Source: Epithemia pelagica (taxonomy: Eukaryota > Protista > Bacillariophyta). From it: DNA of 64,000 nucleotides. Numbering within the stretch: the stretch's first letter is position 1; each line of letters starts with the position of its first letter. The notes under the pieces were generated by a model that was not told the DNA's origin, did no database searches, and was given only the letters and a program-made list of their open reading frames with translations. A program made the translations under genes and the position numbers. The stretch spans positions 310,001 through 374,000 of the forward strand of contig OX337241.1 of the NCBI GenBank assembly GCA_946965045.2, written 5' to 3'. This document shows positions 6,470 through 45,554 of this stretch, one piece after another.

Positions 6470-7312
6470 TCATAACATATATTCCACATCATCCTCCTCG
6501 TCTTGCTCGTCGCTCCCTTCGTCGCTCTCTTCATTAACCTTGTATTCATGTTCCTCTTCTTCTGAATCATCATTCTCATCTGAATCATCATTCTCATCTG
6601 AATCACCATTCCAATTGCCATAACAGCCATCCTCTTCATCTTGTCCGTCTGAATCGTCTTCCTCAGTGTCATCCTCTTGCTCTTGCCAGTCGTCGCCTCC
6701 ATCGCTTTCCTCTTGATTGACCTCCAACTCACTGAATTCCTCATCTTCCTCTTCTTCTGAGTCGTCGTTCTCATAGGAATCGCTTTCCTCTTGATTGACC
6801 TCCAACTCACTGAATTCCTCATCTTCCTCTTCTTCTGAGTCGTCGTTCTCATAAGAATCCTCATCGTCTTCCCAGTCGTCACCATTGTCACTCTCTTGTT
6901 TGCAATTTTCAGTTGACGAAGAAAGCACATAATTCTCAGGAAGATCAGGTTCGCTAAATTCGTGACGTTCCTCCACCAAACTTAATTTAACAACCCCGTC
7001 AATGAGATCATCATCGTTGTCATAGACGTAAGCCTTCATAGCAATACGTTTCCCATTTTCCTGACAAAGTCGAATATCACAGAGTCGTGATCGAATCCTT
7101 TCTGCGATACATCGCAACACATCAATTGCCTTGGAATACTTTTGGATGACACACAGACGGATGTAAAAATCATGCTCACTGAAATAAACGATACAATCAA
7201 CAGGTTTAAACGCACAGCCTGCCTCGATGATAGTCCGTACCAGATAACCAGGCATGCCTGGATGAGGGAAAAACCCGGCACGATAACGGAGACCTACACG
7301 ATGACGGGGCAT
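6470..7312 (-). CDS. Hypothetical protein with highly acidic C-terminal half
   Basis: 280-aa ATG-started ORF: ~130-aa globular N-terminus, then an Asp/Glu tract containing an in-frame 78-bp duplication (6701-6775 / 6779-6853). Confidence 0.6.
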   Translation of the reverse strand: MPRHRVGLRYRAGFFPHPGMPGYLVRTIIEAGCAFKPVDCIVYFSEHDFYIRLCVIQKYSKAIDVLRCIAERIRSRLCDIRLCQENGKRIAMKAYVYDNDDDLIDGVVKLSLVEERHEFSEPDLPENYVLSSSTENCKQESDNGDDWEDDEDSYENDDSEEEEDEEFSELEVNQEESDSYENDDSEEEEDEEFSELEVNQEESDGGDDWQEQEDDTEEDDSDGQDEEDGCYGNWNGDSDENDDSDENDDSEEEEHEYKVNEESDEGSDEQDEEDDVEYML

Positions 7313-7531
7313 TATGCTTTCTTCGCAAGGGTTTCGACAAAACTATAACAGAAGTCGAACAAACACAGCAACTTCCTACATCATATCGTTCTTTTCTGCA
7401 GCACATTCAAATTAACCTAATGCTATGGTGGTGGTGCCACAAAGTTCAGATTCCATGCAATCGAATGAATTGAGCGCAAATGATAAGTAAGGAAATATTG
7501 CGATCATTCAAAAGTGATCCAATGAAACTAA

Positions 7532-7789
7532 TTCCTTGGAATCTCGGATCAACAGTTTGGTCGCAGAACAATTTCACAGCCTAATACACAAACCACATGT
7601 CACAGAGAGTATGCATAGCTCCGTTAGCACAGAACCCATATGCAGGTCAGTTGGTAGACATTCCTCTGAATCTCGTATCGCCAGTTAGGTCGCAGAAAAA
7701 TTTTGGAGCTTGTTAATACACCAACCACATGTTCCAAAGAGTATGCATAGCTGCCTTAGCACAGAAACCACATGTAGTTGTCAGTTGGT
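7532..7789. repeat. ~129-bp degenerate tandem duplication upstream of RepHel
   Basis: GAATCTCG...GGTCGCAGAA...AACCACATGT...GAGTATGCATAGCT...TTAGCACAGAA occurs twice. Confidence 0.85.
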
Positions 7790-7914
7790 TCGTGACAGTT
7801 AGGTAGAAGACCTATCTACTGACTGTGTCACTTACCTTTGACTTCTCTTCTCACAATACTCATTTGGCCTAAGTTGTCACCAGTTGTAACCAGCAAGATC
7901 TGCATTACCAAGAA

Positions 7915-10900
7915 ATGTTAGCTAGAGACACCTCGATCCAAAAAGGAATAGCCAGAGCAGTGGCAAGTCGGGATTCTCTATTGACTAAGAAAGGAGACTT
8001 GTTTTTCCCAAAAGTATGTTGTGTCTGTGATCAATTCATCAAGGTTGGGTCAGAGAAATGCTTGAAGATTGATGATATTCTTCATGAGAAAATAAAACCA
8101 AAATTCATGAAGTCTAATCTTGACTTTTCACACTATGGTACCGGACTAGAGAGCCAGAAACAGATCAAGAAACATTACACACAAACGTGTTACGATTCCT
8201 CTCATTCCAACAGAAAGTATCGTCCGCTGCAAAGCTTGGTTCTTTCACCGTCCTCTTATGCAATCAAAAAGGGACAATCTGAAGGATTTGGATGTTGCTC
8301 AGAATGTTACCATTGCATCATTTACATGAAAAAAGGAATAGTGACCCTGATAAAATCCCCAAAAATGCTATCATCAATGGCTATATGATTGGTCCTACAC
8401 CTCTTTGCTTGCAAACTCTGAATGAGGTCGAACTTGCACTCATTTCGCCGGCGAGGACAAACAAACACGTTTTTTCATTCACGGCAGGATCACATAAATC
8501 AATTAAGGGTTGGCACTCCTTGTATTACAATGACCTCAAAGCTGTCAATGGGGTTATAAATTGGTGTCTGTCAGCAACAGGACAAGCTGACAGTGCACTT
8601 CCTAATCATGGCAAAAAACAAAGTGAACATACTGGCCAAGACATTGCTGCTCGATGGACAGAACTTTTTGATCACGACATGGATGATAGTGATGATGACA
8701 ATGTCAGTGATGTTGGAAATGACATTCAAGACAATAATAGTGGCATCAGCGACAATATGAATGAAAATGATGACACAGATCAACCGCCACTTAATAGCAA
8801 TGAATCGCCTCTTCTGCCTCAAATTGCTGTTGTTTTAACAGGTCCTTTCACACCTACACAGAAAGCTTTGACTCGTCAGCGCACAAACGTTCGATGGAAT
8901 TTGGTCAAAAAAGCGCTACAATGGTTGAAACAACACAATCATTTGTACCATGACTTTGATTTGCCACCAGAACATCTTGTAAAACCAGTTGTCATTGACA
9001 AAAGTGATGACGCACCTGCCTCAACGTCCAATGTTGAGCAAGTTTTTGAAATCACGGCGGTCTTCCCTGATTCTGATGAACCTCAACAGAAAAATGGAGG
9101 GTTCTCCTCCCAGGATGATTTCATGCAAATGACGCTTGATCGTCTTTTGGTAGACCATGACAATAAAGATGCAACATTGATTTCAAGACCTTCAAAAACC
9201 TTGTTGAAAGACTATCAAGGTTCTAATCTCCTGAAGGCATTTCCTTTACAGTTTCCTTATGGGATTGGTGCCAATGATAAAGATGGAAATCCCCATGTCG
9301 GAATGAGTTACTTTGGGCATCTGATGCGACACTCAAGCAAGTTATTTCACCATGCTGATTTTGTATGTGTCGTACACAATATGTTTGAGCGTCAAAGAAT
9401 GGTCTCAAATTCATATTTGCAAACCAGTGATACACAAGCAGAATCATTTGCTACAATCACTAACGAACAGATTCAAGATGCCATCAAGCGCCATCTTGAA
9501 AATGCCCAGGGATCAGGTCCTAGTGACCAGTTTTTGAGAAAGATGAAAGCTGTCGCATCTTCTATGGGACACACTGCAGGAGCTGCCAGAAAAGCACGAC
9601 AAAATATGCTAGCAATGATTGTAAAATTTGGTTTGCCAAGTGTGATGTTTACAATTACACCAGAAGATGCCGTAAATTTCAGACTGCGTGTAATGGTGAA
9701 CAAAAAGGTTGGTGAAGCAATTCCACCTAACCCAGCTACAACTTCAACTTTGGATCAACAAGAATTCATCCTTGACTGTGCTCGCATTAGACAGATTCAC
9801 CCGGGAATGTGTGGTATTGACTTTGAAAATGTGATTGCAATAACGATTGAGCATCTCCTTGGCTGGGATATGAAAAAGAGAATGAACAAAATTGATGAAG
9901 GTTTATTTGGTGATTTGCTTGCGTGGTGTGATGCAGTTGAGGAGCAAGGAAGAAAAACGCTTCATGATCATTTTCTCTTATGGTTGTTAAAGTGGTCAAA
10001 GTTATTGAAAGGACTTGCCAATCAGGCAACAAGAGAACACTTTTCGAAGCTCTTAGTTGACTATGCATCAAAGGTCATGAGCACACATATGCATGGCGAG
10101 ACTATTCCGCCTTGTGTAAATGATGCTTGTGTCTCACGTGCCTTCCACCCATGTTCCAAACAAGACATTCGGAATTTGCAAACAAAGATTGGTGTAACAT
10201 CCCTTGGTGGGAAATCAATTGTCAGATTCGCAAACTGCAACACAGCAATGACAAGTGAAGCTCTTGTTCTTTCCAGATTGAAAAACATTCTCCCAGCCAT
10301 GGCTTTTCAAGAACAACAACCACAGAATGACCCAATGGCACAAGCTTCATCCTTCAATGTTCCACTCACAAATTCAATGGAATTGTTCCTAATGCGTCAG
10401 CAGATCTTACATCCCAAGAGAATGACAACTGATGGCACCTTTGTTCTGACAGTATTACGCAATTTGCATCGCTCAAAACATGCTATTTCTTGTTTCAAGA
10501 AAGGAGACGAGTGTCGTATGCATATTCCGTGTGCAGAGTGTAAAAAAACAGAGTTGAAGTTTTCGGAAGATTCAACAAAGTGGTTTGATTGGAAAGGCAA
10601 TGATCAATCCAGACACTTGTTCACACTGGAAGCAAATCGAAAACACCATGATGCATTTGTCAATATTCACAATTGTCATGCAAGCCAAATTTTTGGTTGC
10701 AATACTAATGTTGTGACAGCTGTTGACGGAGGAAGTGTCATGTATATGACATGTTACATTTCTAAGAATACTCAAGAAGAAGACAGTTCACTGTTTACAA
10801 ATGCAGCTAAACAAATGATACAAAAAATGCGGGAAAGATTGCTTGAACTTGAGCAGACTACCAATTCGACAGAAATTGAGACAGTTGAGCAAGACCGTGA

Positions 10901-22985: not shown

Positions 22986-23832
22986 GATGATGAAGATGAT
23001 TTCAGTAGAATGTGTCTGTTTCCCGTACTATACAATGTCACGAACGGATTGAAACACAAGGCATGCACAATCAGTACCTGAACACAGTTGACAAAGGAGA
23101 GAGTGTGGTGGTGATGCGGGGTGATGTGTGATTGCAATGGGCATGGGCGGCCGCCATGGTATCTTTTTCTCCGTCGCTGTCCGTCCCTCTGTCCTTCTGT
23201 GTGGCCCACCTTTTATTGCGCTATCTGTCTAATAACTATCCGGCAACCTATGATCTAGCTAGCCCTCTTCATCTCATAGGATCGGCCTCCTCCTCCGAAT
23301 GTAGACTCATATAGCTCAGGATTCGTCCAATTTATACATTCAACCTCGTTTGAGGTGTGCCACTTTTGTCTGTCTTGGGATCTCTCTACTACCTAGAGAC
23401 ACATCACCAAATCCTCGAACCTCATATTATACAGAGGATGCATGGTTCCGTTTCATTCCTCCCCATTGCTATACTCCTATTTTAGGTTGTGTGCGGTTGG
23501 AGCTGCGAGAGTTCTTGTGGTGGTATCTCTACTGTATTAACAGACGAGAGTGTGGTAATTCCCATGGGGGACTCCCGTCGTTTGGAGGGTGGTCAGTGGT
23601 CCCTTTGGTGGTTCCTACAGTATTGCTTCACCACCACCATTTGCAAAAACCCTTCTCGTCCAAGGAGATGGCCAATGGTACTACCATGTCCTTCCTGGGG
23701 TTCCTATTGTATTGCTTCAACACCACCTGAAAAACTCTTGTCGTCGTAATCCACGGCACCAGCCGGACGTGCGAATCCATCTCCTGGTTGTGGATGATGA
23801 GAGACTGGACTTGTAGTAACGACTCGGCATTT

Positions 23833-25686
23833 TTACTTGCGGCCACGCCGCCGACGACGACGCCCGGCAGTCGTATTTTCTCTGGCGGGGTCGAGTTCGG
23901 GATACTGCTGTTTGAGCCATTGCACGTAGAGTGGATCTTTTTTCTGAACCTTTTGGATTTGCGTTTGCATTTGGTCTGCGGTCAAGGACCAATTAGTGTG
24001 TTGAATCTTGCGTTGCAAGGCCGCCGAAATTTGGACGAGTCCCGTCCCGTGCAGCAAGGATTGAATCCGCGTGACATTGTGGTGGTGCATCTGGACAAAT
24101 CCCTGGATCCATCCTCGGACGGCATCATCCACGGTATCTCCCAATTGGGACCGATACAAGTAGACTTGTCGACTGCGAATTCCACCGACGCGGGTATCGA
24201 CGCGACTCGTATAGACCTCCCAACTTCCTATATAATGACGAATGCGAATGGGAACATACGAGGCCTCGTTCCAGGGACAGGTCTTCAATACGCGATGTAC
24301 TCGACCCGAAAAGGGCAGCACGGTAGAAGTGGATGATTGATTTGTCATTGTGGAATTCGTAGTCACGTGGTCATGTTGGGGAGGTATGAAAATCATGGAT
24401 TTGGGGAGTCCATTGACGGCGCCATAGTCATGAGAGGCTCGATGCAACCAAGAGAGGGTTTCAAAGTGACTGGCATTCAAGTAGGATGGAACGTCTTGTT
24501 GGATCCGTTGTGGTTCCTCGGAAATGGCACTAAACAAGGTGCGTTCCATGACGACGCAATTCGAGTCCACCACCTTTTGTCGATATTCCAACTGTTTCTG
24601 GTTCTTGTGGTTGTTGGACAAAGATGACGACGACGACGACTGGAGGAGCTCGTTCAAAAAGTGTTGAATACTGCCAGGTTGGGATGCCATGCGTTCCACG
24701 GCATTGGGTACGACGGTGGGATCCAAATACATGTATTCGTCCACATCGTGAAAGGTAATCCACAGTCCCTCCTGGTCGTGTTCGGTCGAGTGTTGTTTCT
24801 GTTGTTGTTGTCGTTGTTGTTGTTGCTGTCGCATGAGATGCGTAGTACATTGGGGATAAAACAAATTTTGGGCCAATAGGTGACGATGGATGCTGGAGTG
24901 GAACGACGACGATCGGCCGGCGGCTTTTTTCGTATATCCCACCAAATCGGTAAAGTTCCAAAGGACAATCTCGACGTAGGGTCGCCATCGATGGACAATG
25001 TCCAGAGGAGACGTGTCCGAGAGTGGATCCACCAACAAGACGACGTGTCGCAAGGGCAACATGTAGGAATGGTACGCGAGCCATTCCGGCAAACGATGAT
25101 TTTCGTCCATGACCATGAGACAGGCCGCAACAACAGAAGAGAATGACGACCTGTTGGACATTTGTTGGTCGTCATGTGTTTGGTTTTGCTGCTGTGACGT
25201 TTGGTCCACCACGAACTCAAAGGGCCGTGGTTGTGTATCGTTCTGGAGAATGACGGTATGGTTCTTGTCGTGTTTCGAGGAGTGTCCTTTTGGTGTCTGG
25301 TCCACCATGATTCGTCCTCGAGTGGTTGGGAAGGTTCCATTAGTACTGCTACTAGTAGGAGTAGTGGTTGCAGTGGCGTCGTCTTTATTGTGGGCCGAGG
25401 TGGTCCTTCCTCGATCCAATGCTCCCAACTGGAGCAGCAGCACTCGACCAATCACGTCCTCCTCCTCCCCAAGACTAGTACTATCGGTCATCATGTTCCA
25501 CAACATGCGACCATTCCAGGAAACCAAGCAGCCAATCATCATCCCGAGTAGCCCCACGAGAATGGGAAATCGAGACAAGTTCCTTCTTCTTGTTGTTGTG
25601 GTTGTGGTGGTGCTCCGAGGGTGACCAACAGGATGGGCGACCGTCGCGGCGGCAGCATGTTGTTGTTGCTGTTGTTGTTGGTCCAT
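23833..25686 (-). CDS. Type II membrane glycosyltransferase (GT92/GT2-like), copy A
   Basis: N-terminal TM segment, low-complexity stem, AACLMVMDENHRLPEWLAYH, WITFHDVDEY (DXD), IRIRHYIGSWE. ATG 25686 aligns with the start of copy B. Confidence 0.8.
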   Translation of the reverse strand: MDQQQQQQQHAAAATVAHPVGHPRSTTTTTTTRRRNLSRFPILVGLLGMMIGCLVSWNGRMLWNMMTDSTSLGEEEDVIGRVLLLQLGALDRGRTTSAHNKDDATATTTPTSSSTNGTFPTTRGRIMVDQTPKGHSSKHDKNHTVILQNDTQPRPFEFVVDQTSQQQNQTHDDQQMSNRSSFSSVVAACLMVMDENHRLPEWLAYHSYMLPLRHVVLLVDPLSDTSPLDIVHRWRPYVEIVLWNFTDLVGYTKKAAGRSSSFHSSIHRHLLAQNLFYPQCTTHLMRQQQQQRQQQQKQHSTEHDQEGLWITFHDVDEYMYLDPTVVPNAVERMASQPGSIQHFLNELLQSSSSSSLSNNHKNQKQLEYRQKVVDSNCVVMERTLFSAISEEPQRIQQDVPSYLNASHFETLSWLHRASHDYGAVNGLPKSMIFIPPQHDHVTTNSTMTNQSSTSTVLPFSGRVHRVLKTCPWNEASYVPIRIRHYIGSWEVYTSRVDTRVGGIRSRQVYLYRSQLGDTVDDAVRGWIQGFVQMHHHNVTRIQSLLHGTGLVQISAALQRKIQHTNWSLTADQMQTQIQKVQKKDPLYVQWLKQQYPELDPARENTTAGRRRRRRGRK

Positions 25687-27304: not shown

Positions 27305-29149
27305 ATGGAGCCACAGCAACAACAACAGGCCGCCGCCACGGTCGCCCATCCTGTTGGTCACCCTCGGACCACCATCGCCACAACAACCAAAAGAAGAAGA
27401 AGAAGAACAAGAATACACGACGACAGGAGGGTTCCCAGTCTACGAGTTGTCGGGTTTTTCGGCATGATTGGATGGTTGGTTTCCTGGAATGGTCGCCTGT
27501 TGTGGAACATGATGATCCTGACTGGTACGAATAGTACGGAGAAGGAGGAGAACGTGATACTGGGTGGATTGCTGCAGTTGCAGTTGGGAGCGTTGGATCC
27601 AGGAATCATGACCAACAACAACAACCCTGCAACCACTTCTAGTGCTAGTAGCAGTACTAATAGAACCAATCAAACCATTCGGGGAGGAAGAATCATGGTG
27701 GACCATGCACAAGAAGAAGGACAATCCTCGAAACACAACAACAACAACCATACCACCATCCTCCCGAACGATACAGAACAACGGCCCCTTGAGTTCGTGG
27801 TGGACCAAACGTCACAACAGCAAAGCCAAACACACGACGACCAAAATATATCCAACATGTCATCGTCCTCCTCCTCTGTTGTTGCGGCCTGTCTCATTGT
27901 CATGGACGAAAATCATCGCTTACCAGAATGGCTCGCGTACCATTCCTACATGTTGCCCTTGCGTCACGTCGTCTTGTTGGTCGATCCACAGTCCGACACG
28001 TCTCCCCTGGACATTGTCCATCGATGGCAACCACACGTCGAGATAGATGTTTGGAACTTTACCGACTTGGTCGGATATACCGAACAAGCCGGTGCCTATC
28101 ATCTCATTTTGGCCCAACGCTTGTTTTATCCCCAATGTACCACGCATCTCCTGCGACAGCAACAACGACAAGAACCACACGAACCGACTGGACTGTGGAT
28201 CACCTTTCACGATGTGGACGAATACATTTCGTTGGATCCCGCTGTAGTACCCAATGCCGTGGAACGCATGGCATCCCAACCTGGCAGTATTCAACACTTT
28301 TTGAACGAGCTCCTCCATTCCTCGTCGTCGTCGTCGTCGTCGTCCAACCACCACAATCCAAACAAGAAGAACCAGAAACAGTTGCAACAGTACCAGCGGT
28401 ATCGACAAAAGGTGGTGGACTCGAATTGCGTCGTCATGGAACGCACCTTGTTTAGTACCATTTCGGAGGAACCACAACGGATCCAACAAGACGTTCCATC
28501 CTACTTGAATGCCAGTCACTTTGAAACCCTCTCTTGGTTGCATCGAACCTCTCATGACTATGTTGCCGTCAATGGACTTCCGAAATCCATGATTTTCATA
28601 CCTCCCCCACACCACCACGTACCGGCGAATTCCACAATGACCAATCAATCATCCGCTGCTGCCGCGCTGCCCTTTTCGGGTCAAGTACATCGCGTATTGC
28701 AGACCTGTCCCTGGAACGAGGCCTCATATGTTCCCATTCGCATTCGTCATTATATAGGAAGTTGGGAGGTGTATACGAGTCGCATCGATACTCGCGTCGG
28801 TGGCATTCGCAATCGACAAGTGTACTTGTATCGGTCCCAATTGGGACGCAACGATACCGTGGATGATGCCGTCCGAGGATGGATCCAGGGATTTGTCCAG
28901 ATGCACGGCCACAATGTCACGCGCATTCAATCCTTGCTGCACGGGACGGGACAGGTTCAAGTCTCGCCGGCCTTGCAACGCAAAATTAATGAAACCAAGT
29001 GGTCCTTGACGTCCCACCAAATTCAAGCCACAATCCGCAAGAGTCAGAAAAAGGATCCACTCTACGCGCAATGGCTCCAACAACAGTATCCAAAGCTTGA
29101 CCCCGGAACCAAGAATGCAGGGCATGGTCGGCGGCGTGGTCGCAAGTAA
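27305..29149 (+). CDS. Type II membrane glycosyltransferase (GT92/GT2-like), copy B
   Basis: Close paralogue of 23833-25686 in inverted orientation with the same motifs; 614 aa. Confidence 0.8.
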   Translation: MEPQQQQQAAATVAHPVGHPRTTIATTTKRRRRRTRIHDDRRVPSLRVVGFFGMIGWLVSWNGRLLWNMMILTGTNSTEKEENVILGGLLQLQLGALDPGIMTNNNNPATTSSASSSTNRTNQTIRGGRIMVDHAQEEGQSSKHNNNNHTTILPNDTEQRPLEFVVDQTSQQQSQTHDDQNISNMSSSSSSVVAACLIVMDENHRLPEWLAYHSYMLPLRHVVLLVDPQSDTSPLDIVHRWQPHVEIDVWNFTDLVGYTEQAGAYHLILAQRLFYPQCTTHLLRQQQRQEPHEPTGLWITFHDVDEYISLDPAVVPNAVERMASQPGSIQHFLNELLHSSSSSSSSSNHHNPNKKNQKQLQQYQRYRQKVVDSNCVVMERTLFSTISEEPQRIQQDVPSYLNASHFETLSWLHRTSHDYVAVNGLPKSMIFIPPPHHHVPANSTMTNQSSAAAALPFSGQVHRVLQTCPWNEASYVPIRIRHYIGSWEVYTSRIDTRVGGIRNRQVYLYRSQLGRNDTVDDAVRGWIQGFVQMHGHNVTRIQSLLHGTGQVQVSPALQRKINETKWSLTSHQIQATIRKSQKKDPLYAQWLQQQYPKLDPGTKNAGHGRRRGRK

Positions 29150-29902
29150 AAGCTCTCTCTCTCTCTCTCTTTCTCTCTCGTTTCAAGGAGGAGGATACAT
29201 TTGTGTGTCCTGCAGGTGTTGATTGTCTCACCACTCTCTCTCTCTCTCTGTCTAATAGAGAGACCACAAGAACTCTCACTCCCTTACCACAGGATCAACC
29301 TAGGTACCAAAAGTGTAGCATTCGGGAGGATTGAAATGGTTCAAGGTTTCCGGGTGATCCATATTGTGTGGTGCTGCTTTGACGATTCGTAGAGTGGTAC
29401 TATATCACCTACTCCAATGTATAAAAAAAGTCGTGTCCCCCTCTGGAGGAGAGAGAGAGAGAGACAGTTGGATGGTTCGATCGGCCTGTGTCGCCGAGCA
29501 CCCCACCAACAACAACAAACGAAAGCCACAGTGGTCGACACAAGACGAATACTCCTTCTTTTTTGGAGAGTAATCGAAAGCACACGAGCTGGGACCCTTC
29601 CACCACCACTACACACTGTACAAATTGTACCTGTCATTGGTACGCACATGGGAACCCTCCAACTACGAATCGTTGGCGGCACGACGACAGTGGTCAAACA
29701 CAAGAATGGTACTGTTTTCTCCCAATGAGTAGTATAGAGTTGCCACACCTCTGGACGGATGATTCATGGTGAGAAACTCTCTGTTGTTGGCAGGATGAGA
29801 AACTGTTGTTGCCTCAATCTATCTACAGTTCGGTTATATGGTATATCGAATCCATTGTGTCTGTTTGGAGAAGAATGTATGAATGAATGAATCCATCGCT
29901 TT

Positions 29903-31920: not shown

Positions 31921-33111
31921 TCATGGATTGGTCTTTACTCGTTTACGATTGAATGTCGAGGTCGAGAGGGGTGAAAGAACAGCATGTTGAATATGCATTT
32001 CTTCCAGAGAATGATCGTTGGGCAGCTGCTCACAGAGTCGAGAAAAACACCATGAATGCTTGTCCATGAATGGTAATGTCGCACACGAAGGATTCACATA
32101 TCCACCAATCACGGCAATTTGATTGGCAACAGTCACCATACTGCAGCCTTCAACGGGAGCTTCGATGGATGGGAGATTCCACATGCGGTTGCTGTGCGTA
32201 TCCAAGACTTGCACCGTTGGATTGGCCTCTCCTCCCGCCACCACGATACAAGATCCCACGGCAACCGCTGCACAAGAATGTCGTGGGCGGGAAAGTACCA
32301 AACCAGAGAGAGTGGTCCAAGTGGAGGAGAGGGACATGATGATTGTAGAAGCAGTCTCCTTCTTTGTCTCATCCTTGGCACAAGGCTTTGCAAAGTCCAA
32401 ATACTCCACGGATTCAAGATACGGATAGCCATTATTGTTATGACCTCCGACGACAAAGATGCGGTGACCAACGACCACACTGGCACACCCAAATCGTGGA
32501 GCGTTAAGGCATGCTCCCACAGTGACACTGTGGTTGTTGGTATCAATAATATCCACCGAAGACAAGCTTTGCCCTTGATTCCTTCCACCCACTACGACAA
32601 GGTATCTATTATGCACCGCAACAGCACCACATCCATATTTTCCCGTCGATAACCGACAGTTCAATGTCTTCCAATGGATCTCGTTTGTGTTGCTTGATAT
32701 CGAAGATGATTGGAGCAAATCATTAGCATCAATTTGTTCGATACAATCCAAACTTGGACCTGCATCGCGTCCTCCAATCACGTAGAGGCTTCCATTACAC
32801 ACAACAGCGGCATGTCCGATTTTTTTCTTGTTCATGGGTGGCCCTTCTCGCCACTGCTGGTTGGACTCTGATAAATTCAATACAAGAACGGACTTCATGT
32901 TACCCTGGCCAAGTTGAAATCCGCCCATCACTACGACGGTTTGTCTCTTGCTGGTGTCGTTGTTCTTATCGGGATGATCAATTACGACCGAGGCAGGGTA
33001 CTCTCGCCATCCTCCCTCAAGAGGAGGCCAGTCGTTGGTATTCCATTCTGAATCTTCGTCCAAAAGGACAAGGCCCGACTGCCATGCCTGTTCTTGCAAT
33101 GTCATGCTCAT
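31921..33111 (-). CDS. Kelch-repeat protein
   Basis: Repeated GG-containing kelch blades: VVVMGG, LYVIGG, LVVVGG, IFVVGG, IVVAGG, IAVIGG, with WREGPPM and LSRPRHSCAAV. Confidence 0.92.
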   Translation of the reverse strand: MSMTLQEQAWQSGLVLLDEDSEWNTNDWPPLEGGWREYPASVVIDHPDKNNDTSKRQTVVVMGGFQLGQGNMKSVLVLNLSESNQQWREGPPMNKKKIGHAAVVCNGSLYVIGGRDAGPSLDCIEQIDANDLLQSSSISSNTNEIHWKTLNCRLSTGKYGCGAVAVHNRYLVVVGGRNQGQSLSSVDIIDTNNHSVTVGACLNAPRFGCASVVVGHRIFVVGGHNNNGYPYLESVEYLDFAKPCAKDETKKETASTIIMSLSSTWTTLSGLVLSRPRHSCAAVAVGSCIVVAGGEANPTVQVLDTHSNRMWNLPSIEAPVEGCSMVTVANQIAVIGGYVNPSCATLPFMDKHSWCFSRLCEQLPNDHSLEEMHIQHAVLSPLSTSTFNRKRVKTNP

Positions 33112-33411
33112 GGCTCCAAACGTTGCGACAGCTGAGTTTTTATGAGGATCGCGAGAGAGAGAGCTGCGATGGGTGTGAACCGATGATGTGTCTGGATGCT
33201 GGAAACGAAAGAGGACATATTATAATTCGTTCCGGAGTGTGGGGTAAACCTGATATTATCTGATACCAGAACGTATATCTATCTATATGGTTTCCATACG
33301 TATTGAAAAGATAGGTAGTCATAACAAAGGAGTACAGTCTAACGTAATTAGTGTAGCTAAACCCACCTCCACCCGGTCTTTCGACCACTACACTTAGCAC
33401 TACTAGCTAGA

Positions 33412-34351
33412 CTAATCTTCTACTTCGACTTGGAATACATCGAGGTCGTTGTTTTCGATACGAAGCTGGACCAAATTTACCACCGCCCCAAAAACCACAT
33501 TGTGCCATCCAAGGTCACCTCTGTATTTGTCTTTTAGAATGTTGTACCTTTTGAAGTAGCTGTTGACTACTTCATGTCGTGCTCTTGCATCAGCCATCAT
33601 TTTGTCCATAAAGTTGTTGTGTCCAGACGGTGTAATGAAGTATTCTCCACCATCATTGTAGCCTCCATCTGCAACCATCATTTCCCCTTCATCCACTTTG
33701 TCTATGATCCAATCTCTGCTGATATTGAGGTCTGCCCATGTCCCACAAGGGTATGGGCCATTCCACCACACAATCCACCCAGTGTTGATGCATACTCCAA
33801 TTTCATAACGCAGCCCAGGTCCCTTGAATTTGTGGGAAAACCACTTAGGGTCAAATGGAGCAGGCTCAAAAATTCTAAAGTCTGTTCCATCAACAGTAAT
33901 GAAGCAACATTGTCCTTCTTTTCTTGCATCATATCTATTTTCCCATTTTATCTAAAGAAAACAGGACAAAGATGGTGAGAATACAATGCTGACAAACTGG
34001 TACACGCCGTCCTCATGAACACTTACCAGTACTTACATAGTTAAGATGAGCCATCAGCTTTGTCACTATCTTACTCCATTTTCTAAAAGTCTTTCTTGTT
34101 GTATTTGCAATTGCCACCAGGACATCTTCTGAGGCGTAAACCTTAAGGTAAAGAAGTCCCCATAACAGGTGGAATGGCTTCCCTCCTCTTGACAGAAGGT
34201 TCTCTATTTCGTCCCACACATGCACACAAAGAGAAGGGGTTAGACTGAAATAGCCTCGAAAAGCTCTATGAAATTCATTTGTTGTTGGATTCCCATTCTT
34301 CCCCATCATAGGAAGAGCACTTTGAATGAATGTTCCTGCATTCACCTCCAT
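33412..34351 (-). CDS. Harbinger-type DDE transposase (DDE_Tnp_4-like), exons 34351-34037 and 33951-33412
   Basis: 85-bp phase-0 intron GTAAGT...TTAG gives an uninterrupted 284-aa protein with TVDGTDF, FSHKFKGPGLRYEIG, WWNGPYPCG, VADGGY and RARHEVVN; D-D-E triad intact. Confidence 0.9.
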
Positions 34352-35079
34352 CGTCAGGAATTGTGAGTTTATGCGATATTCATGTTGGTGCCCATGCCGT
34401 GCAGTGAAGCTAAGTTCCAATGCCAAAACACTATTCCTTTGCGTTCATCAAGAATTTTTGTTATAGTAGTGTTCGAATTTAATGTATGACTGTCTTTACG
34501 TGAACGCCATGGAGTAATCTAAGTACAGAAATGGTCACAGTCACTATTTCTGGGTCACTTGGGTCTGATCCGGTCAGATCTTGGATCAGACCACTGTATC
34601 AGTTTCAGTGATGAGGACCAATATTGAAACATGAATAACTTTTCGCAAGTCTCTCTAGAAACAGTATAGAAGCGACCCTCTTATTCACTGAAAAAAGAGT
34701 TAACTAGATATAACTTAAGCCTAAACATTGCTCATCAACAAGGTCGTCTGGTCTGCCAATGAAAAAGCTGCCTGGGTTGAAAAAAACGACCTGGGTCGTT
34801 TTTTTACCACCAGACCCAAAGACAACCTACGTAATTAATCCTTATATTTAACTGACCCACAGTTAACTCATTAAATAAGGAACAAGGAGGTCGGTTCAGT
34901 ATTGGCATAAGTGCCAATGTCATGGAGAAATCTTCATTTATAAGAATCAGGATCAGACCCGGTCTGATCCTGGTCAGACCAGAATACCAATTACCCAGTA
35001 TGCTTTCTTGGTCATAGTTTGGTTTCGCCAAAAAAACCACCCAGGTACTAAACTCCCCAACGTTCATTCCAAAATTGTT

Positions 35080-36142
35080 ATGACACGCTCCGGTAGGAAC
35101 TCCCTTGGTGAAGGTCCCTTACTCTCTTGGGATTCCAGGACAGCAGACGCTGAGTACCTGGAAGACTTGGTAAAAAATCGTGCCTTTGCAGCAAGCGCTG
35201 CACCAAAGCAAGTGTGGTCTGATCATCCACAGTTCATGAAGTACAAGCTTGAATCATTTCGTACTGCATTGAATAAACTCAAAAAAAATATGGATACCAT
35301 TTGAGAGATGGCCCAAAGGAACAGGACAGTAAGGTGACCAGCAAGGAAAAGAGTTTCAATCCATTGGAAGATGTTGAGGATGATGCAGACGACGACCTTC
35401 CCCCTGGTTCTGGTTTGTTTGGGAAGAAGAAGGCACCAGGTGCACCAGGTAAGTCATGGTACATGATCAAAATTGGCGACTTCTTGGTACCTACCTAATG
35501 TTCTCTCATCTATTGCTCTTTCTCTCTTTCTCTACAGATAAGATTAAGAGTATAGCTATGAATTTGTTACAAGGAAAAGAGAAAAAAAGGTCTGGAGTTG
35601 CCGTTCCAGTTGGTGGTGCTGACCTTGGAGCATTGGAAAACAAGAGAAAGAAGTCAGAAAAGAAGGATATGATGAAAGAATGGACGCCCCCTCATGTGCT
35701 GACCCAGTGGGTGGATCAGAACAAACAAAAGCATGTGGTTGTAGTGATCAACCTGCCCACTGGGGTTGCGCACAGAGATACAACAAATTGCGACATTGAG
35801 GTTGGTGAGTCACAGAAGGAACTGATTGTGAAGATCATTTGGCCTACCAATAGCACAGATGTGGGAGAACTGTTGAAGCAGTTCTCCCAGGAGTGGATGG
35901 AGAAGGATGAAAACATTCGTAAGAAATTGGCTCTAGAAGATGCATTCAATCAATTGAAAGAAAAACAGACTGATTATGTGAGATCCAAGTTTGTCCTCTC
36001 TTTGCCTTTTGCAGTACAGTCAAAGTTTGACTACGAGTTTTTGTTTGACACTATCAATGGATTTCGTGCACTGATGGTATTCCTAGACGAACCGGATGCA
36101 AAATTCGAGGGTGGAATGCGCCACAAAATGGTGGCCCTTTAG
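35080..36142 (+). CDS. Transposon partner protein (putative DNA-binding), intron 35449-35537, one frameshift
   Basis: ATG 35080. +1 A in the A8 run at 35281-35288 restores KKKYGYHLRDG. A phase-1 intron GTAAGT...TACAG joins to DKIKSIAM. Lies inside the TIRs. Confidence 0.75.
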
Positions 36143-36536
36143 ATAGCTGTAAAGTGTTCTTGTGTCGCGGTTGCAAAAACCGGGTGGTGGTGGGGACCGA
36201 TTACACTATATTTTAAGTTACCTATTATTCTGTTGATCGTATTACTAACCTAGCAATAGCTAACATAGTCGGTCTGCCTTTCTATGATGAAGTGGGGCTG
36301 ATATTATCAGGTTTACCCCACTCTCCCGCAATATTCGTGACAAACACACGACGTGCGACCATATCGGGACGACTGCGACATTATATACTGCCCGCAATAA
36401 GATGGCATCACGTCCCTATATGGTTATCTTAGCATGGTTCTTTTCGCAAGCCAAAAAGGTCCAGAATGTTTGAGAACATTTACTTAGTATAGTATGATAG
36501 ACCCCTTCCAACAACAACAACAATACACAAGAAAAG

Positions 36537-37041
36537 TTAGAGGGCATTGACAACCGTTAGCCAAATCAATAGTGTCTTGGCGGTAAAGCTCAATGCAATG
36601 AATTGCTTTTCCCCCACTACATAGTCCTAGTAGATTCCAATCTTGTTCCATTGCAAATAAAATGTGGCCGCAAAGGATGTATCGAGGAGGAACTGCAAAA
36701 TGATCAAGGCCCAAACGGCCGATGCTTCACCCCCACGACTGTTGTAGACGGCAAAGTAATTGAAAATCATGGCCCAATTGGTCAAGTGTCCAATCCAGCC
36801 CGTGAAGAAGGGCCTCCAGTTCTGGGCACGATTCTCCGATCGGGCCTTGGCATTGACCGCCTCATGAGTCGCGGCGCACTGATGGATCGAAATGGCCATG
36901 ATAACAAACAAACAAGGCAATGAGCAAGTGGACATTGGTAATACCAACTTGTTGACGAGCAATGAGGACCTTCGATAGGGCTGATCAAGATTGGTACAAT
37001 CAAACGAGGCTGTTTCCATACAGACGGTGATATTTCACATT
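36537..37041 (-). pseudogene. Heliorhodopsin-like gene remnant (helices C-G)
   Basis: Reconstructed KVLIARQQVGITNVHLLIALFVIMAISIHQCAATHE...WRPFFTGWIGHLTNWAMIFNYF...VWALIILQFLLDTSFAATFYLQWNKIGIY*DYVVGEKQFIALSFTAKTLLIWLTVVNAL*. SxxxK Lys codon at 36578-36576, TAG at 36629-36627, extra 4-mer at 36903-36914. Confidence 0.8.
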
Positions 37042-37398
37042 CGACTCCGCTCGTTCCACAGGCGCCAGAAGTCGTCGTCCGCATCCGTCGCGTCATTGTC
37101 TATAAAATCGATTATGGTGCCGATCTACCTAGATGCAGTGTTAGGTTCTTGAATCCACATAGAGAGGACACTCCTAGAACATAGAAAATCCCATGAGATA
37201 GAAAAGATAGCTATACCATAGCAATAGCTATTTGGAGTACTATGGTAGCTACTCCATATTACTCCTAATCTATTTTTACTCCTAGTTTTTAGCGACGTTT
37301 TTTGTGGTTGAGTTTTGGAGGGGACAATGGACGGATCTTCCCGCCGTGTCACCAACACACACTCTAGAAGAAATCAACACAACAAGAAAACTGAAGCA

Positions 37399-39817: not shown

Positions 39818-40988
39818 CTAATACGATCGCAGCAGCATGGGACGCCTCGTTCTCCCACTAAATATTACGTTACGTTATGACATATAGCCCCCAATGATAT
39901 CAGCGGATATACAGGAGCTCAAATGCTCGATCGATGGGCGGAAACGTGTCCACCGTATATTATAGAAAGCTCAAAGACAAAACGAACGAAACATTTCCCC
40001 CAAAAATTTCACTTCATGTGCTATGCGGCGGAGCATCGCGTGGAGTAGCATCGCTTGGACAAGGAATCAAGTCATTCTAGTTGGCAAAAGCTCACAATAG
40101 AAGACAGTTGTCCAAAGCAACTCGTGTTGTCTTCAGCCTACTCCTACAACGCACAGCCAACTTCTGGCACAAATAGCTTGCGCACCTCGGTTGCCTCAAG
40201 TTGCCTCCTCATTGAGTTGGCCCACACTTTTCCGGTCGTTTCATTCGGTTGTTGCTTCAACGGCTGACAAGCCAGATTGGACAATGTCATTTTCCTCCCC
40301 ATGCGACTCGAGAAAGTTTCCCTTGTCAACTGGAGACAATAAGGTGTATCTCAGCACCCTTATCGACGACGAGAAGGTTGTCGAACACGTTTTGAGCCTT
40401 GCCAAGAACGAATATGACCCCCCTCTTGTCTTTGGATGGAATGACGCTGGCTTGCAGGAATTTTGGGGCAAGGCCGCTGCTTATGGTGCTACTATGGGCG
40501 CCCTGCTGCCTCCAAATTCCATAAATGGGGGCGTTGCGATTCCTGCCCATGGCGGGATGGTTGCCGTGGGCAAAGACCTTGACAATCTCAAGATTTGGAT
40601 TCTCGATTTCGTCCGCCTACAGGAGAACCCTCCTCCTGCGGTCTGTGGAGTCACGACAGGGTTGGCCTGTTCGCAACAACAGTTCGGCTTAATGTGTGTT
40701 CGTCTTGCGCAGATGATTATCCATCCATGGTTTGCGGCTGTCATAGGCCATGGCCCGCCGATCACTCAACCTTTGGTGAGTATTTGGCTTCCTCGTCCGC
40801 GTGTTGCCAGTGGACAATGCGATCAAATTCCTATGGGAACCGCATTGATTCACTAAGTTCAAGTAAATGGGATCTAATACGATCACAGCAGGATGGGATG
40901 CCTCCTTCTAATTAAACATTATAACATATATTTTACTCGCAATGGCGGATAGGCGGAAAATGTTCACCGTATATAAAGCTCCAAGACA
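39818..40988. repeat. Degenerate direct repeats (39818-39979 and 40874-40988) flanking an orphan ORF
   Basis: CTAATACGATC(G/A)CAGCAG(C/G)ATGGGA(C/T)GCCTC and GGCGGAAA..GT.CACCGTATAT...AAAGCTC.AAGACA are shared by both. Confidence 0.8.
40284..40856 (+). CDS. Orphan 190-aa protein, copy 1
   Basis: ATG-started ORF with the same length and about 90% aa identity (by eye) to 52857-52285. No family recognised. Confidence 0.65.
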   Translation: MSFSSPCDSRKFPLSTGDNKVYLSTLIDDEKVVEHVLSLAKNEYDPPLVFGWNDAGLQEFWGKAAAYGATMGALLPPNSINGGVAIPAHGGMVAVGKDLDNLKIWILDFVRLQENPPPAVCGVTTGLACSQQQFGLMCVRLAQMIIHPWFAAVIGHGPPITQPLVSIWLPRPRVASGQCDQIPMGTALIH

Positions 40989-41288
40989 CCGCGAGTTGCG
41001 CCACATACAGCAGGGACATGCGAAAGGAAACCGATTACGACTCTTGCCTTGGTCTGTTGCTCTGTCGAAAAGAAGAAAACAAGTCGACCAAAAACCAAAT
41101 GGCAGTTGTCGGCAGATTTATGAATTATGAAAATAGACACAAAAAAGGTGTCATGAATTGAAGCAAATGGGGAAACAATGGAAAGAGGAAGACGAGCTTG
41201 TAGATAGAATGTTCGAACAAGGCTCTCGGTTCCCTCGGGGCACCAAGAAAGGAGAATGATGAATTGTGTATGCTCTTTGAGCAATTAT

Positions 41289-42040
41289 TATGAAAGTATG
41301 AACGTTGTAATCTTGACCAGACTTGTCGCTGGTTGTTCGTTTGGACAGTGAGCAATAATTAGGAAAGTATAAACGTTGTGCGCGCAGCGTGCGCAACAAG
41401 TTGGATAGGTGGGAAAGATGATGTCTTTTCCCTACGTGGTGTTGGACAACCATGTTTGGGTGGTGTTGGTTATGAAAGTATGAACGTTGTAATCTGGATC
41501 AGACAGAACTTGTCGTTGGCTGTGAGTTTGGACAGTGAGAGAGATTATGAATGTATGAACGTTGTATTACACGCAGCGTGCGCAACATGTTGGACAGAGG
41601 TGGGAAAGATGATGTCTTTCTTTCCCTACGTGGTGTTGGACAACCATGTTGGGGTGGTGTTGGTTCTACCCAAAATCTCGACCAGACTTGTCGCTGGTTG
41701 TTCGTTTGGACAGTGAGCAATAATTAGGAAAGTATAAACGTTGTGCGCGCAGCGTGCGCAACAAGTTGGATAGGTGGGAAAGATGATGTCTTTTCCCTAC
41801 GTGGTGTTGGACAACCATGTTTGGGTGGTGTTGGTTATGAAAGTATGAACGTTGTAATCTGGATCAGACAGAACTTGTCGTTGGCTGTGAGTTTGGACAG
41901 TGAGAGAGATTATGAATGTATGAACGTTGTATTACACGCAGCGTGCGCAACATGTTGGACAGAGGTGGGAAAGATGATGTCTTTCTTTCCCTACGTGGTG
42001 TTGGACAACCATGTTGGGGTGGTGTTGGTTCTACCCAAAA
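41289..42040. repeat. Higher-order tandem repeat: 2 x 365 bp, each made of two ~180-bp subunits
   Basis: 41315 and 41680 start near-identical 365-bp copies; GGTGGGAAAGATGATGTCTTT...CCCTACGTGGTGTTGGACAACCATGTT occurs four times. Confidence 0.93.
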
Positions 42041-45000
42041 GGGCCATGGGATTGGCTCGCAACAGCATAAACGTCATGGATGTCGTGTTGTTGTTCTTGG
42101 AGGATTGTGCTATTTGCAAACAGGGAACCAAGCCCGTGACTGGATCGGCCAGTTCCAAACTTTCCGGAAAGGATTGGACCAGTCTGTGAATAACCACCCA
42201 AAGTGCGACACACTCTTGTTGTTGGTCGTCACCGTCGTTGGTTTGCAGTGTGAATGCCTCGTCGTCGGGTCCAGGATGAAACGATGGAAGACTATCCAGG
42301 AGACAATGCAAGGGCAGTCGTCCTTGTCCATCGCGAACACGACTGGCATCGGGATACAATCGAAGCAAGGTTTGAATCCATTGGACCCAAATCTCATTGT
42401 TGGGTTCCATCCTGGCGGTAGTAGTAGTTGTTGCGTAGCCGTCCCTGGCGCCACGATCAAGTGGAGGAGGAGAAATCGAAGCAAGAATTGTCACGGCATG
42501 ATGCAAGGGCAATTGGCCATACGCGTCGCGCAACCGAACTTGCTCTGGAAATTTCCACAACAGATAGTCCATGAGAAACCATGGAAGGGTGGTGCTGGTG
42601 CTGTCATTGGTTGGATTGTTTCGAGTAGTACTAGCATTTCTCTGGTCATTGTCCGAACCGAAGCACAGAGATTGGTGAATCCAGGTGGGCGTGCAAAGTT
42701 GGGAAACGGTATGTAGAATAGTACTCGTGTCATTCAAGGTGGTCGACAGCAGCGCTTGGGGAGTCCTTGTTGTTGTTTGGTGGGTCCTTTCATGCCACAA
42801 ACGTGTTGCATTCAAGAGGAGTACCATGCGTGGAAACACTTGACATTCCATGTGATAGGAATGATCATTGGACTCTTGCATTTTTTGCACTGCCTGACAC
42901 CACAGGGATTCCGACAAGGACATTTTGGTGGAAGAAAACAGGGACGACGGGAATAACGACGACGACGACAACGACTCGTCAGTGTCTTCAATCGCCATGG
43001 ACTCCCTATCATTATTATTATTTTGGTTCATGCCTTCTCCAGTTTCTTGTTCGAAAGCAAAGAATCGTTGTGCTTCCGCCCGTAATCGACGTGTCGTGGG
43101 GGATAATTCCGATTCTCCACTCAGAGAGCCTCCAGGACGAGTTGTTGTGGTTGTCCTTGTTCCGCCCCATGGTGGTGGAAAAAGAGGATACAATCCAGAA
43201 GGACCGTCGCCACCCCCTGTGGTGGTGGTGGGGATTGTTGATGTAGGAACGTACGCATTGCTGAATGGTGGGGAATGATACTGACGACAATACCCATTCG
43301 TACGTTCCACGTAGCTGTGGCAGACCAACTCCAAGGCTGTTTGTCCGGCAAGATTGGATCCACCCAAAACAACCAGCCCCGTTGGAAGAGTGGACCGCAG
43401 TGACAATGGAGGAGGAGAACCATGGGTGCCAAAGAACCCTGACGAGTGGTTGTCCTCCTCGAAAGAAAAGGCCAACAAGGTTTGTTCCACCACAATTTGA
43501 AAGAGGGACAAGGGCAAGGCCGGTAAACAACATGCCACATGAAGTGGCAAGTCTCCCTGATAATTGGCCTGTCGATACAAGGACTGCTGCTGCATGCCAA
43601 AAGGAGCTTGTAACATGGATTTCAAAAACCTCAACGGTGCCGACAAGGGTTCCATCATGCCTCCTGATAACGAATTCTTGTCGTGTTTATTGTTGGAATG
43701 CGTCGTCGAAGTCGTCTTTTGCTTGCCATGGTTGCTCCCATTCCCACGACGACTGGCACCAATAGCGCTAGCACCACCCAATCGTCGAAGAGCAATGTGC
43801 AAGGTATTGCATCCCGTCGTCACGGCGGTATCCCACCACGAACAATTGTTGGTAGTGGTAACCGCTTCCAAGTGATGTAGTGTTTGGATGCACTCCCATA
43901 AGAGACGATCCACCAAAGAGGAAGAAATGGATTGCCTATTCTCCTGTAGCAATGTTCTTGTCATGGTATCTTCTTCTTCTTCCTCCTCCACACACGACGA
44001 GAACATGGCTGGATCCATACGGGACAGGAACCGGATCCAGGGACGGTCCATACAAGGAGTGTGGTGGTCGTCGTCTTTGGGATCATTCTGGTTTGTGGAA
44101 CACTCCGAGAACGACCCCTCACCATCATAATGGTTGTGAAGGTGCATTCCCCTCTTGCGGCTACTGTTGCTCCTTTGTGGGCGCGGGTGTGCGTATTGTT
44201 GCGTTTGTTGAAGTTGTTGCAACAAGTCGGACAAGATGGATAGTCTAATAGTAGAGGATAATGCCCCCTCGTGCTGGTATGGACTGGAGAATGGGTGGAA
44301 CCAGAGGACTTGCTCCTGAAGCACGGTCCACCCCCGAGCGACCATGGCCTCGACTGTGATTGTTTTGGAATCCTCAAGACGGTTCGCAAAAATCCTACGG
44401 GACGTCCCCGAATCCTGTCGACTGGTACTTGGAGTACTTTTTCTCCTACTCGTAGGAGCGGGTGGTGGTTTCTTGTCGGGTGTAATAATAATGACCCCGG
44501 AGGATGCTTGGTAGGGAGGAGGACTCTGTGTGTGACGGTGCTGCTGTTTCTTGCGGAAGGGTGTGATATCTGGTCGAGCAGGAGGAAGAGGAGAATGGTA
44601 GTACTCGGAGACAGGGTGATGATAATGATGAGGAGGATTGTGCCGGGGCGACCCAGAAGAAGAAGAAGAAGAAGAAGAAGAAGAAGAAGAAGAAGAAGAA
44701 GAAGAAGAAGAAGAAGAAGAAGAAGAAGAAGAAGAAGAAGAAGAAGAAGAAGAAGAAGAAGAAGAAGAAGAAGAAGAAGAAGAAGAAGAAGAAGAAGAAG
44801 AACGAAACGAATGGGAAACCGTTTGTGGTGATGGTGGTGGTAGCACATTCAGGTCTTGCATGGTCACATTGTCGTCGTCTCGTGCTTGTGCGAGGTTCAG
44901 CAGCAGAGGATTGGGCTGCGAGAGTTGTCTGGTTGTTGTTGTTGTTGTTCTTGTTCTTGTGGTTGGGAGAATGCGTCTCCGCACTGGTGGTCGTGCGTGG

Positions 45001-45554
45001 ATCCCCGAGGAGGATGACCATGACGACGACAAGCTTCGTTTGTTTCTCTTCTCGTTGGGGACGAACCACGAGCTGCTCGTCGATGGAGAAGAAGAAGAAG
45101 AAGGAGAAGCACGCGTGGTGGTGGTCGGTGCTCGTGGTGTGGGACCCGCATTCGGAGGAGGAGTGGTGCGGCTGGTGCCAGAAATTGGGGGAGACGAGGA
45201 GGATCGCGTAGTAGTAGTAGTAGGAGGAGGAGTCATCGTCACAACCGAGTTGGTGGTGGTCGTGGACGACGACGACGACAAGAAGATCCATGCTGGAAGT
45301 CGTTGTTGCAGTGTGGAGGGTGGTGGTCCGGCCGTTGGTGGTGGTAAAGGAACAAAAGTCCGGGGCCGTTCGGCTGCGGAAGGATGATGATGATGATGGA
45401 AGGACAACTCGGGTCGTACACCACCACCACCACCATTGCTCCTCACCGACTCGTAATGTTGTTGTAGTTGTTGCTGGGTCAAATCATGGTGTGTTGTTGT
45501 TGTTGCTGTTGTTCCTGAATCTGTTTCCAGCGTCCACAACGACGCCATGGTCAT
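41991..45554 (-). CDS. Ankyrin-repeat-like protein with long low-complexity N-terminus
   Basis: 1187 aa; GCNTLHIAL, QGDLPLHVAC, AGQTALELV, DAYGQLPLHHAV, DGQGRLPLHCLL, DPVTGLVP...FMLLRANP. Confidence 0.8.
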   Translation of the reverse strand: MTMASLWTLETDSGTTATTTTHHDLTQQQLQQHYESVRSNGGGGGVRPELSFHHHHHPSAAERPRTFVPLPPPTAGPPPSTLQQRLPAWIFLSSSSSTTTTNSVVTMTPPPTTTTTRSSSSPPISGTSRTTPPPNAGPTPRAPTTTTRASPSSSSSPSTSSSWFVPNEKRNKRSLSSSWSSSSGIHARPPVRRRILPTTRTRTTTTTTRQLSQPNPLLLNLAQARDDDNVTMQDLNVLPPPSPQTVSHSFRSSSSSSSSSSSSSSSSSSSSSSSSSSSSSSSSSSSSSSSSSSSSSSSSSGSPRHNPPHHYHHPVSEYYHSPLPPARPDITPFRKKQQHRHTQSPPPYQASSGVIIITPDKKPPPAPTSRRKSTPSTSRQDSGTSRRIFANRLEDSKTITVEAMVARGWTVLQEQVLWFHPFSSPYQHEGALSSTIRLSILSDLLQQLQQTQQYAHPRPQRSNSSRKRGMHLHNHYDGEGSFSECSTNQNDPKDDDHHTPCMDRPWIRFLSRMDPAMFSSCVEEEEEEDTMTRTLLQENRQSISSSLVDRLLWECIQTLHHLEAVTTTNNCSWWDTAVTTGCNTLHIALRRLGGASAIGASRRGNGSNHGKQKTTSTTHSNNKHDKNSLSGGMMEPLSAPLRFLKSMLQAPFGMQQQSLYRQANYQGDLPLHVACCLPALPLSLFQIVVEQTLLAFSFEEDNHSSGFFGTHGSPPPLSLRSTLPTGLVVLGGSNLAGQTALELVCHSYVERTNGYCRQYHSPPFSNAYVPTSTIPTTTTGGGDGPSGLYPLFPPPWGGTRTTTTTRPGGSLSGESELSPTTRRLRAEAQRFFAFEQETGEGMNQNNNNDRESMAIEDTDESLSSSSLFPSSLFSSTKMSLSESLWCQAVQKMQESNDHSYHMECQVFPRMVLLLNATRLWHERTHQTTTRTPQALLSTTLNDTSTILHTVSQLCTPTWIHQSLCFGSDNDQRNASTTRNNPTNDSTSTTLPWFLMDYLLWKFPEQVRLRDAYGQLPLHHAVTILASISPPPLDRGARDGYATTTTTARMEPNNEIWVQWIQTLLRLYPDASRVRDGQGRLPLHCLLDSLPSFHPGPDDEAFTLQTNDGDDQQQECVALWVVIHRLVQSFPESLELADPVTGLVPCLQIAQSSKNNNTTSMTFMLLRANPMALLGRTNTTPTWLSNTT
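44656..44802. repeat. Uninterrupted (GAA)~49 microsatellite encoding poly-Ser on the - strand
   Basis: 147 bp of pure GAA inside the 41991-45554 ORF. Confidence 0.97.

Follow-up and report, generated by a model that had tools for sequence, protein, structure and literature searches.

Heliorhodopsins are encoded in diatom genomes (PMC8413402), and the heliorhodopsin of Phaeodactylum tricornutum, PtHeR, is listed among the diatom photoreceptors, its transcript responding to blue light (PMC7670200). In the heliorhodopsin 48C12, the residues of the Schiff-base region have been named as Glu230, Ser237, Lys241, and Trp246 (PMC9726877). A preliminary description of 64,000 nucleotides of Epithemia pelagica DNA (contig OX337241.1; this whole stretch is referred to below as the window) had reported a heliorhodopsin-like gene remnant on the minus strand and had taken it to imply a little-studied light-sensing rhodopsin for the lineage. 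Given that PtHeR and other diatom heliorhodopsins are already known from the reports cited above, this implied novelty does not hold. Here, the locus is described as a non-functional pseudogene fragment of a diatom-type heliorhodopsin (HeR) gene, a reading to which a probability of about 0.93 is assigned. The working heliorhodopsin of this genome is the product of an intact gene, HeR1, located elsewhere.

RESULTS

Identity and Extent of the Heliorhodopsin Fragment

The fragment lies at positions 36973-36540 of the minus strand and corresponds to the 3' ~48% of a HeR gene: the final ~143 of 296 codons, from the middle of helix C through helix G. An ATG-initiated open reading frame of 130 aa extends from 37019 to 36630 on this strand and ends at a TAG codon (36629-36627). 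The two pieces on either side of this codon were searched separately against the Pfam profile PF18761, which has 242 positions and a gathering score of 26.7 bits. The 130-aa frame matched profile positions 125-212 with an E value of 2.4e-11 and a score of 43.9 bits, and the 29-aa tail following the TAG matched positions 214-241 with an E value of 7.5e-07 and a score of 29.2 bits. The matches are colinear, the TAG taking the place of the single skipped profile position, 213. Given that both pieces score above the PF18761 cut-off and lie in colinear order, the heliorhodopsin match is far beyond chance. By descent, the fragment belongs to the PF18761 family; of the profile that a functional seven-helix protein would span (positions 1-242), only ~120-242 is present.

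The pieces of the fragment can be followed along the minus strand from its 5' end. Helix C ends and helix D begins in a second frame, within KVLIARQQVGITNVHLLIALFV (36907-36972), which runs into a TGTT repeat carrying a frameshifting 4-nt insertion (36903-36914). The second part of helix D and helices E and F then lie together in one frame at 36630-36902 (IMAISIHQCAATHE...FYLQWNKIGIY). Beyond the in-frame TAG nonsense codon (36627-36629), which is found on the window haplotype only, helix G is encoded at 36540-36626, terminates at a TAA (36539-36537), and is assigned by its PF18761 score together with alignments to 6is6 and 48C12. Reading through the TAG gives DYVVGEKQFIALSFTAKTLLIWLTVVNAL followed by a stop, and the continuity of frame across this codon that was noted originally is confirmed.

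A phmmer search of 1.84 billion representative proteins returned 43 matches, all of them relatives within the HeR family. The best was P0001, a protein of 296 aa that is 88% identical over residues 34-130 of the open reading frame and is itself a complete heliorhodopsin (PF18761, 168 bits, profile positions 1-240). In tblastn comparisons with P0001, the D-F part at 36630-36902 showed 85% identity (127 positions), and the second-frame piece at 36907-36972 matched residues 154-176 with 79% identity and an E value of 1e-4. When searched alone, the second-frame piece (26-40 aa) is too short and gave no Pfam match; it is identified by tblastn and DNA alignment.

The account of the locus as a pseudogenized heliorhodopsin remnant is thus borne out by the profile scores of both pieces and by the lesions described below, and the expectation that the lineage has heliorhodopsins proved correct with the finding of intact P0001 in the same assembly. 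The remnant had also been called divergent and hidden. These terms do not apply, given that it is 85% identical to an intact HeR of the same assembly and 95% identical in DNA to the tandem twin of that gene.

Retinal-pocket Residues

The Lys codon at 36578-36576 falls within an LSxxxK motif and aligns with the Schiff-base Lys241 of 48C12 in the alignments to 6is6 and 48C12. The preliminary description had made its assignment depend on this correspondence, which was tested directly and found. The tail of helix G holds the equivalents of Glu230, Ser237, Lys241, and Trp246 of 48C12; in the comparison of P0001 with 48C12 (6su3 and 9ljj numbering), these residues are represented by G-E, L-S, A-K, and W, respectively. 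Arg104, Trp105, Glu107, Tyr108, His23, His80, and Ser76 belong to the part of the gene that is absent. The claim of an intact retinal-binding motif is therefore accurate for the Glu, Ser, Lys, and Trp codons of helix G, all of which are kept, but these represent only the helix-G half of the pocket. Neither haplotype translates the motif in frame: it lies behind the TAG in the window haplotype and, in the other (L004, see below), has been shifted out of frame. Given the missing helices, the fragment is, as judged from its sequence, not expected to bind retinal or to act as a photoreceptor.

Lesions in the Window and in the Allelic Haplotype

Comparison with a paralogue that is 89-95% identical identifies the TAG and the TGTT frameshift as real lesions. 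The latter is a 4-nt insertion of TGTT within 36903-36914 that separates KVLIARQQVGITNVHLLIALFV from IMAIS and shifts the reading frame. It is apparent in alignments to HeR1 and to HeR2, the tandem neighbor of HeR1 at the locus L001 described below; at this site, L001 HeR2 reads TTTGTC----ATT. The earlier observation that removal of one TGTT unit restores the frame is therefore matched by a paralogue without those 4 nt. Introns were considered as the cause of the frame change and were ruled out, as the intact paralogue lacks introns and aligns colinearly over this position. The codon at 36629-36627 is TAG in the window, AAG (Lys) in both L004 and L001 HeR2, and GAA (Glu) in HeR1. Two in-frame insertions were also found: CGT at 36957-36955, which adds an Arg and is common to both haplotypes, and 3 nt at ~36880-36884, which add a His on the window haplotype only.

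The other haplotype is represented by L004 (contig ctg1270l; protein P0091), an allelic haplotig of the window locus that shares 94-98% identity and the same flanking genes and was reached through a further protein grouped in the same cluster at 90% identity. L004 carries the same break at 36973, the same CGT insertion, and the same TGTT frameshift as the window. It has AAG in place of the TAG and is without the extra His; at 36778, it contains an in-frame 3-nt insertion not seen in the window. Deletion of 1 nt at 36588 changes ALSFTAK... to ...ALSLPPRRY followed by a stop, such that the Schiff-base lysine is out of frame. An uninterrupted reading frame is thus found on neither haplotype, one having the frameshift and the TAG and the other the frameshift and the 1-nt deletion. 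Old lesions common to both haplotypes, accompanied by a different private lesion on each, are the signature of a neutrally decaying pseudogene.

The read check that had been proposed over the TAG and the 4-bp repeat was carried out with Logan contigs, in which bubbles have been popped and some of which are mosaics of both haplotypes, so that the allele depths are approximate. Contigs (records 12 and 18) span the TGTT site gap-free at diploid depth, and both alleles are seen at 36629. The deletion at 36588 was present at roughly haploid depth (~57-68, compared with ~126-130 for single-copy sequence).

Several smaller differences were observed around the fragment. Assembly and runs disagree by small indels at 36880 and 37015. 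At 37015, all three runs and L004 have an extra base (C on the plus strand), reflecting a private variant or an error of assembly, and this indel changes which upstream ATG opens the reading frame. In-frame 3-nt indels and one substitution at 36778, 36822, and 36880 distinguish the runs of samples S1 and S2 from the window and from one another; these differences are within-species polymorphism, partly confounded by the mosaic contigs. In L004, a 250-bp stretch immediately upstream of the remnant (window 36964-37214) is tandemly duplicated, and a Copia-type (RVT_2) retrotransposon of ~6.6 kb, which the window does not have, is inserted near window positions 40067-40070.

An Intact Heliorhodopsin and a Source Locus in the Same Genome

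The search for an intact copy that the preliminary description had called for, performed among tblastn and phmmer relatives, yielded the 296-aa HeR1 in the same assembly. Window positions 43111-21921 are 100% identical over 21,191 bp to a locus (L003) on contig ctg1289l of ENA assembly ERZ21939226, and the kelch protein of the window is likewise present on this contig. The gene for P0001, HeR1, is intact and intronless at L001:5001-5891 on contig ctg1252l of ERZ21939226. Given that ctg1289l is identical to the window and that L001 lies on ctg1252l, both loci come from one assembly. In addition, a contig from the runs in which the window is found has the L001-specific letter at all six distinguishing positions between 36594 and 36651, which indicates that the window locus and L001 coexist in the same samples.

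At L001, intact HeR1 is followed by a tandem HeR2 (6993-7954) and then by a kelch gene. HeR2 is decaying here, with a 1-nt deletion between LLSG and LEHL and a change of GEK to GGK. A second locus, L002 on ctg1276l of ERZ21939226, also encodes an intact HeR1 (P0044) and is an allelic haplotig of L001, with 95-96.6% identity. The 3' half of its HeR2 (L002:12010-12587) has been removed by a 663-bp deletion with ACC microhomology. The remaining 5' half of L002 HeR2 contains a tract of ~270 nt that is identical to HeR1 and resembles the outcome of gene conversion. The tandem HeR2 is thus degrading by a different route on each haplotype, HeR1 being intact on both.

At the DNA level, L001:7528-8183 corresponds to window 36973-36326, and L001:8250-9656 corresponds to window 33163-31764. 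Outside these two stretches, no DNA similarity between the window and L001 was found on either side. The shared block is a dispersed partial copy of 2.1 kb that comprises the entire kelch gene together with HeR2 in its 3' half. Immediately downstream of the remnant on the minus strand, its 3' flank (36326-36539) is homologous to the 3' flank of L001 HeR2 (91% identity). The kelch-repeat gene of the window is intact, encoding 396 aa on the minus strand at 31921-33111 (Pfam Kelch_1, E = 2.5e-33). Identity to L001 by segment is 95.0% for the formerly coding HeR sequence, 90.9% for the 3' flank, and 87.6% for the kelch block (L001:8250-9656).

The 5' Boundary of the Fragment and the Proposed Helix C Relic

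BLAST homology to L001 stops at 36973. When 43 HeR proteins were compared with the 64-kb window by tblastn (word size 2, E values up to 10), nothing was detected beyond 36984, and residues 1-153 of P0001 have no counterpart anywhere in the window. The remnant begins in the middle of helix C, directly after the position of the RWxEY motif, at KVLIA.... The source-gene motif (L001 ...CGTTGGACCGAATAC..., ~7494-7508) is without a counterpart in the window, and the upstream neighbors of the remnant are unrelated genes. The preliminary description was correct that a 5' part is missing, but it had set the extent too narrowly in naming helices A-B alone, since the RWxEY part of helix C is absent as well. 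With it, the counterion Glu (Glu107 of 48C12) is missing from the fragment.

A corrupted RWMEYSL string had been proposed at 37026-37006. This string lies beyond the 36973 break, inside a 76-bp block of non-HeR origin that abuts it (36973-37048), and a local alignment of the upstream sequence alone to L001 HeR2 scored 30, no better than shuffled sequences (mean 32.8, SD 4.9); the proposed relic is accordingly rejected. The block has loose ends at 36972 and 37048, and contigs in two runs (samples X1 and X2) match the window only over 36973-37048 before passing into unrelated sequence on both sides. Its depth is ~3.4x that of single-copy sequence, in part owing to the duplication on the other haplotype. 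The block may derive from a transposon or represent filler DNA at the junction of the duplication.

Neighboring Transposon and Other Features of the Window

Between the remnant and the kelch gene lies a 3.1-kb transposon (33235-36325) bounded by 27-nt terminal inverted repeats that are 93% complementary. A 3-bp target-site duplication, CCG, is present at 33232-33234 and 36326-36328, and the corresponding sites are empty in L001 and L004. The distance of ~215 bp from the remnant to the right end of the element, as first estimated, was measured as 211 bp from the stop codon. Disruption of the HeR gene by this transposon was considered and ruled out, as the element lies beyond the stop codon on the 3' side and the unoccupied sites of L001 and L004 are intact. 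The element is hemizygous, being found on the window haplotype only, and its read depth is 10-180x that of single-copy sequence. It is taken to be a recent insertion of a very abundant and possibly active family. Pfam searches of seven internal open reading frames of at least 70 aa gave no family and no transposase; introns or a non-autonomous copy could hide one. The putative PIF/Harbinger label fits the 3-bp target-site duplication.

Other repeats were observed elsewhere in the window. Two tandem units of 367 bp, 99.7% identical, are located at 41288-42040 together with older copies of ~80-85% identity, and overlap the 3' end of a 1187-aa open reading frame (41991-45554, minus strand) that has no Pfam match. 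The segments 23831-25672 and 27313-29151 are paralogous, with 81-87% identity, and each contains an open reading frame of ~614-617 aa without a Pfam match, in keeping with a local duplication.

DISCUSSION

Origin and Decay of the Fragment

The features of the locus can be explained by the following sequence of events. A block of 2.1 kb would have been copied from the HeR1-HeR2-kelch locus, with the kelch gene in full and HeR2 in its 3' half. This copy probably had its 5' breakpoint inside HeR2, leaving the fragment truncated at birth; in that case, helices A to early C would have been absent from the outset, as would a promoter. Neutral decay would then have begun with the 4-nt frameshift and the 3-nt insertion that both haplotypes have in common. 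Later, the window haplotype would have gained the TAG, its own 3-nt insertion, and the transposon 211 bp downstream, and the other haplotype would have gained the 1-nt deletion by which the Schiff-base lysine was lost from the frame.

A different history for the same pseudogene is possible, although we regard it as less likely: a fuller second HeR copy may once have stood at the locus, its 5' half being removed only afterward by a deletion or rearrangement associated with the 76-bp block. Such a history would be a sub-scenario of the pseudogene reading and not an alternative to it. On the stem lineage of the remnant, 7 of 12 polarized substitutions fall at third codon positions, a bias that the eight changes of L001 HeR2 do not have, and the formerly coding sequence retains higher identity to L001 (95%) than do the flank and the kelch block. 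Both observations suggest that the sequence was under constraint for a time or underwent gene conversion between copies, fit a fragment born dead less well, and are weak pointers to later truncation, the counts being too small to be decisive. The repeated block sits exactly at the 36973 breakpoint, and L002 HeR2 demonstrates that deletions of 0.66 kb occur, the left end of its deletion being only 37 bp from the window breakpoint, which is likewise a weak hint. Against this history, the paralogous block is only 2.1 kb long and sharp at both ends, so that trimming on both sides would require more events, and the window holds no trace of HeR1, of the 5' half of HeR2, or of the 7tm_3 neighbor.

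Two readings in which the locus retains a function were also considered. That it is a functional HeR gene, its lesions being assembly errors or introns and its 5' exons lying upstream, is very unlikely and already largely refuted. The perfectly kept helix-G motif, the 95% identity of the coding part to its paralogue, and the small indels between assembly and runs at 36880 and 37015 could be cited in favor of such a gene. However, the 5' break and the TGTT frameshift recur in two haplotigs that were assembled independently, the TGTT site is crossed gap-free by read contigs of diploid depth, and a further disabling lesion is private to each haplotype. The intact HeR1 is, moreover, intronless, and the window contains no coding sequence for helices A-C. 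It is similarly improbable that the open reading frame for helices D-F is transcribed from unrelated upstream sequence to give a membrane microprotein that tunes or interferes with dimeric HeR1, although such a product would amount to regulation of a photoreceptor by a pseudogene. ATG-initiated D-F frames do exist on both haplotypes (130 aa in the window and 176 aa on the other), and products were predicted by the gene caller. By contrast, the start codons and N termini differ between the haplotypes, as a result of the 1-nt indel at 37015, and the C termini differ also, being set by a stop in one case and by a frameshift in the other; a conserved open reading frame structure is not seen, and among the three sequencing runs listed, none was identified as RNA.

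Significance of the Pseudogene Reading

Given that an intact HeR1 is present elsewhere in the genome, the fragment is an ordinary pseudogene. The finding is that of a pseudogene fragment from a known photoreceptor family and not of a hidden or novel photoreceptor. As the fragment is dead and partial, the genome retains an intact HeR, and diatom heliorhodopsins are already documented, it has little significance alone. Its modest value lies in a haplotype-resolved record of gene-fragment decay, comprising common lesions, private lesions, and a hemizygous transposon insertion. The HeR1/HeR2 tandem locus provides, in addition, a small snapshot of contraction in a photoreceptor family. With regard to annotation, the gene calls of 90 and 176 aa labeled "Heliorhodopsin" at this locus in ERZ21939226 merit flagging as pseudogene pieces.

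Comparison with Known Heliorhodopsins

The helix-F YLQ(W/Y) and helix-G GE...LS...K....W motifs of the solved structures of 48C12 (PDB 6SU3) and TaHeR (PDB 6IS6) align residue for residue with the fragment. Pairwise phmmer comparison of the fragment with these HeR structures in the PDB gave weak matches (E = 0.5-1), so that the identification is carried by the profile and the paralogue. Among diatoms, two proteins of Epithemia clementina, KAL7567357.1 and ACA910_002515, belong to the same family (PF18761) and are 70 and 60% identical, respectively, to intact P0001, and MPSEU_000617600 and MPSEU_000617700 of Mayamaea pseudoterrestris, also members of PF18761, are 42-44% identical to it. These closest named relatives of P0001 make a raphid pennate diatom the most likely source. 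Compared with these diatom heliorhodopsins, the window copy consists of the 3' 48% only, is interrupted by a frameshift and a stop, and is without the helix-C counterion. L001 HeR2, the direct source paralogue, shares its 3' flank and its downstream kelch neighbor with the window fragment and, unlike it, retains the 5' half of the gene.
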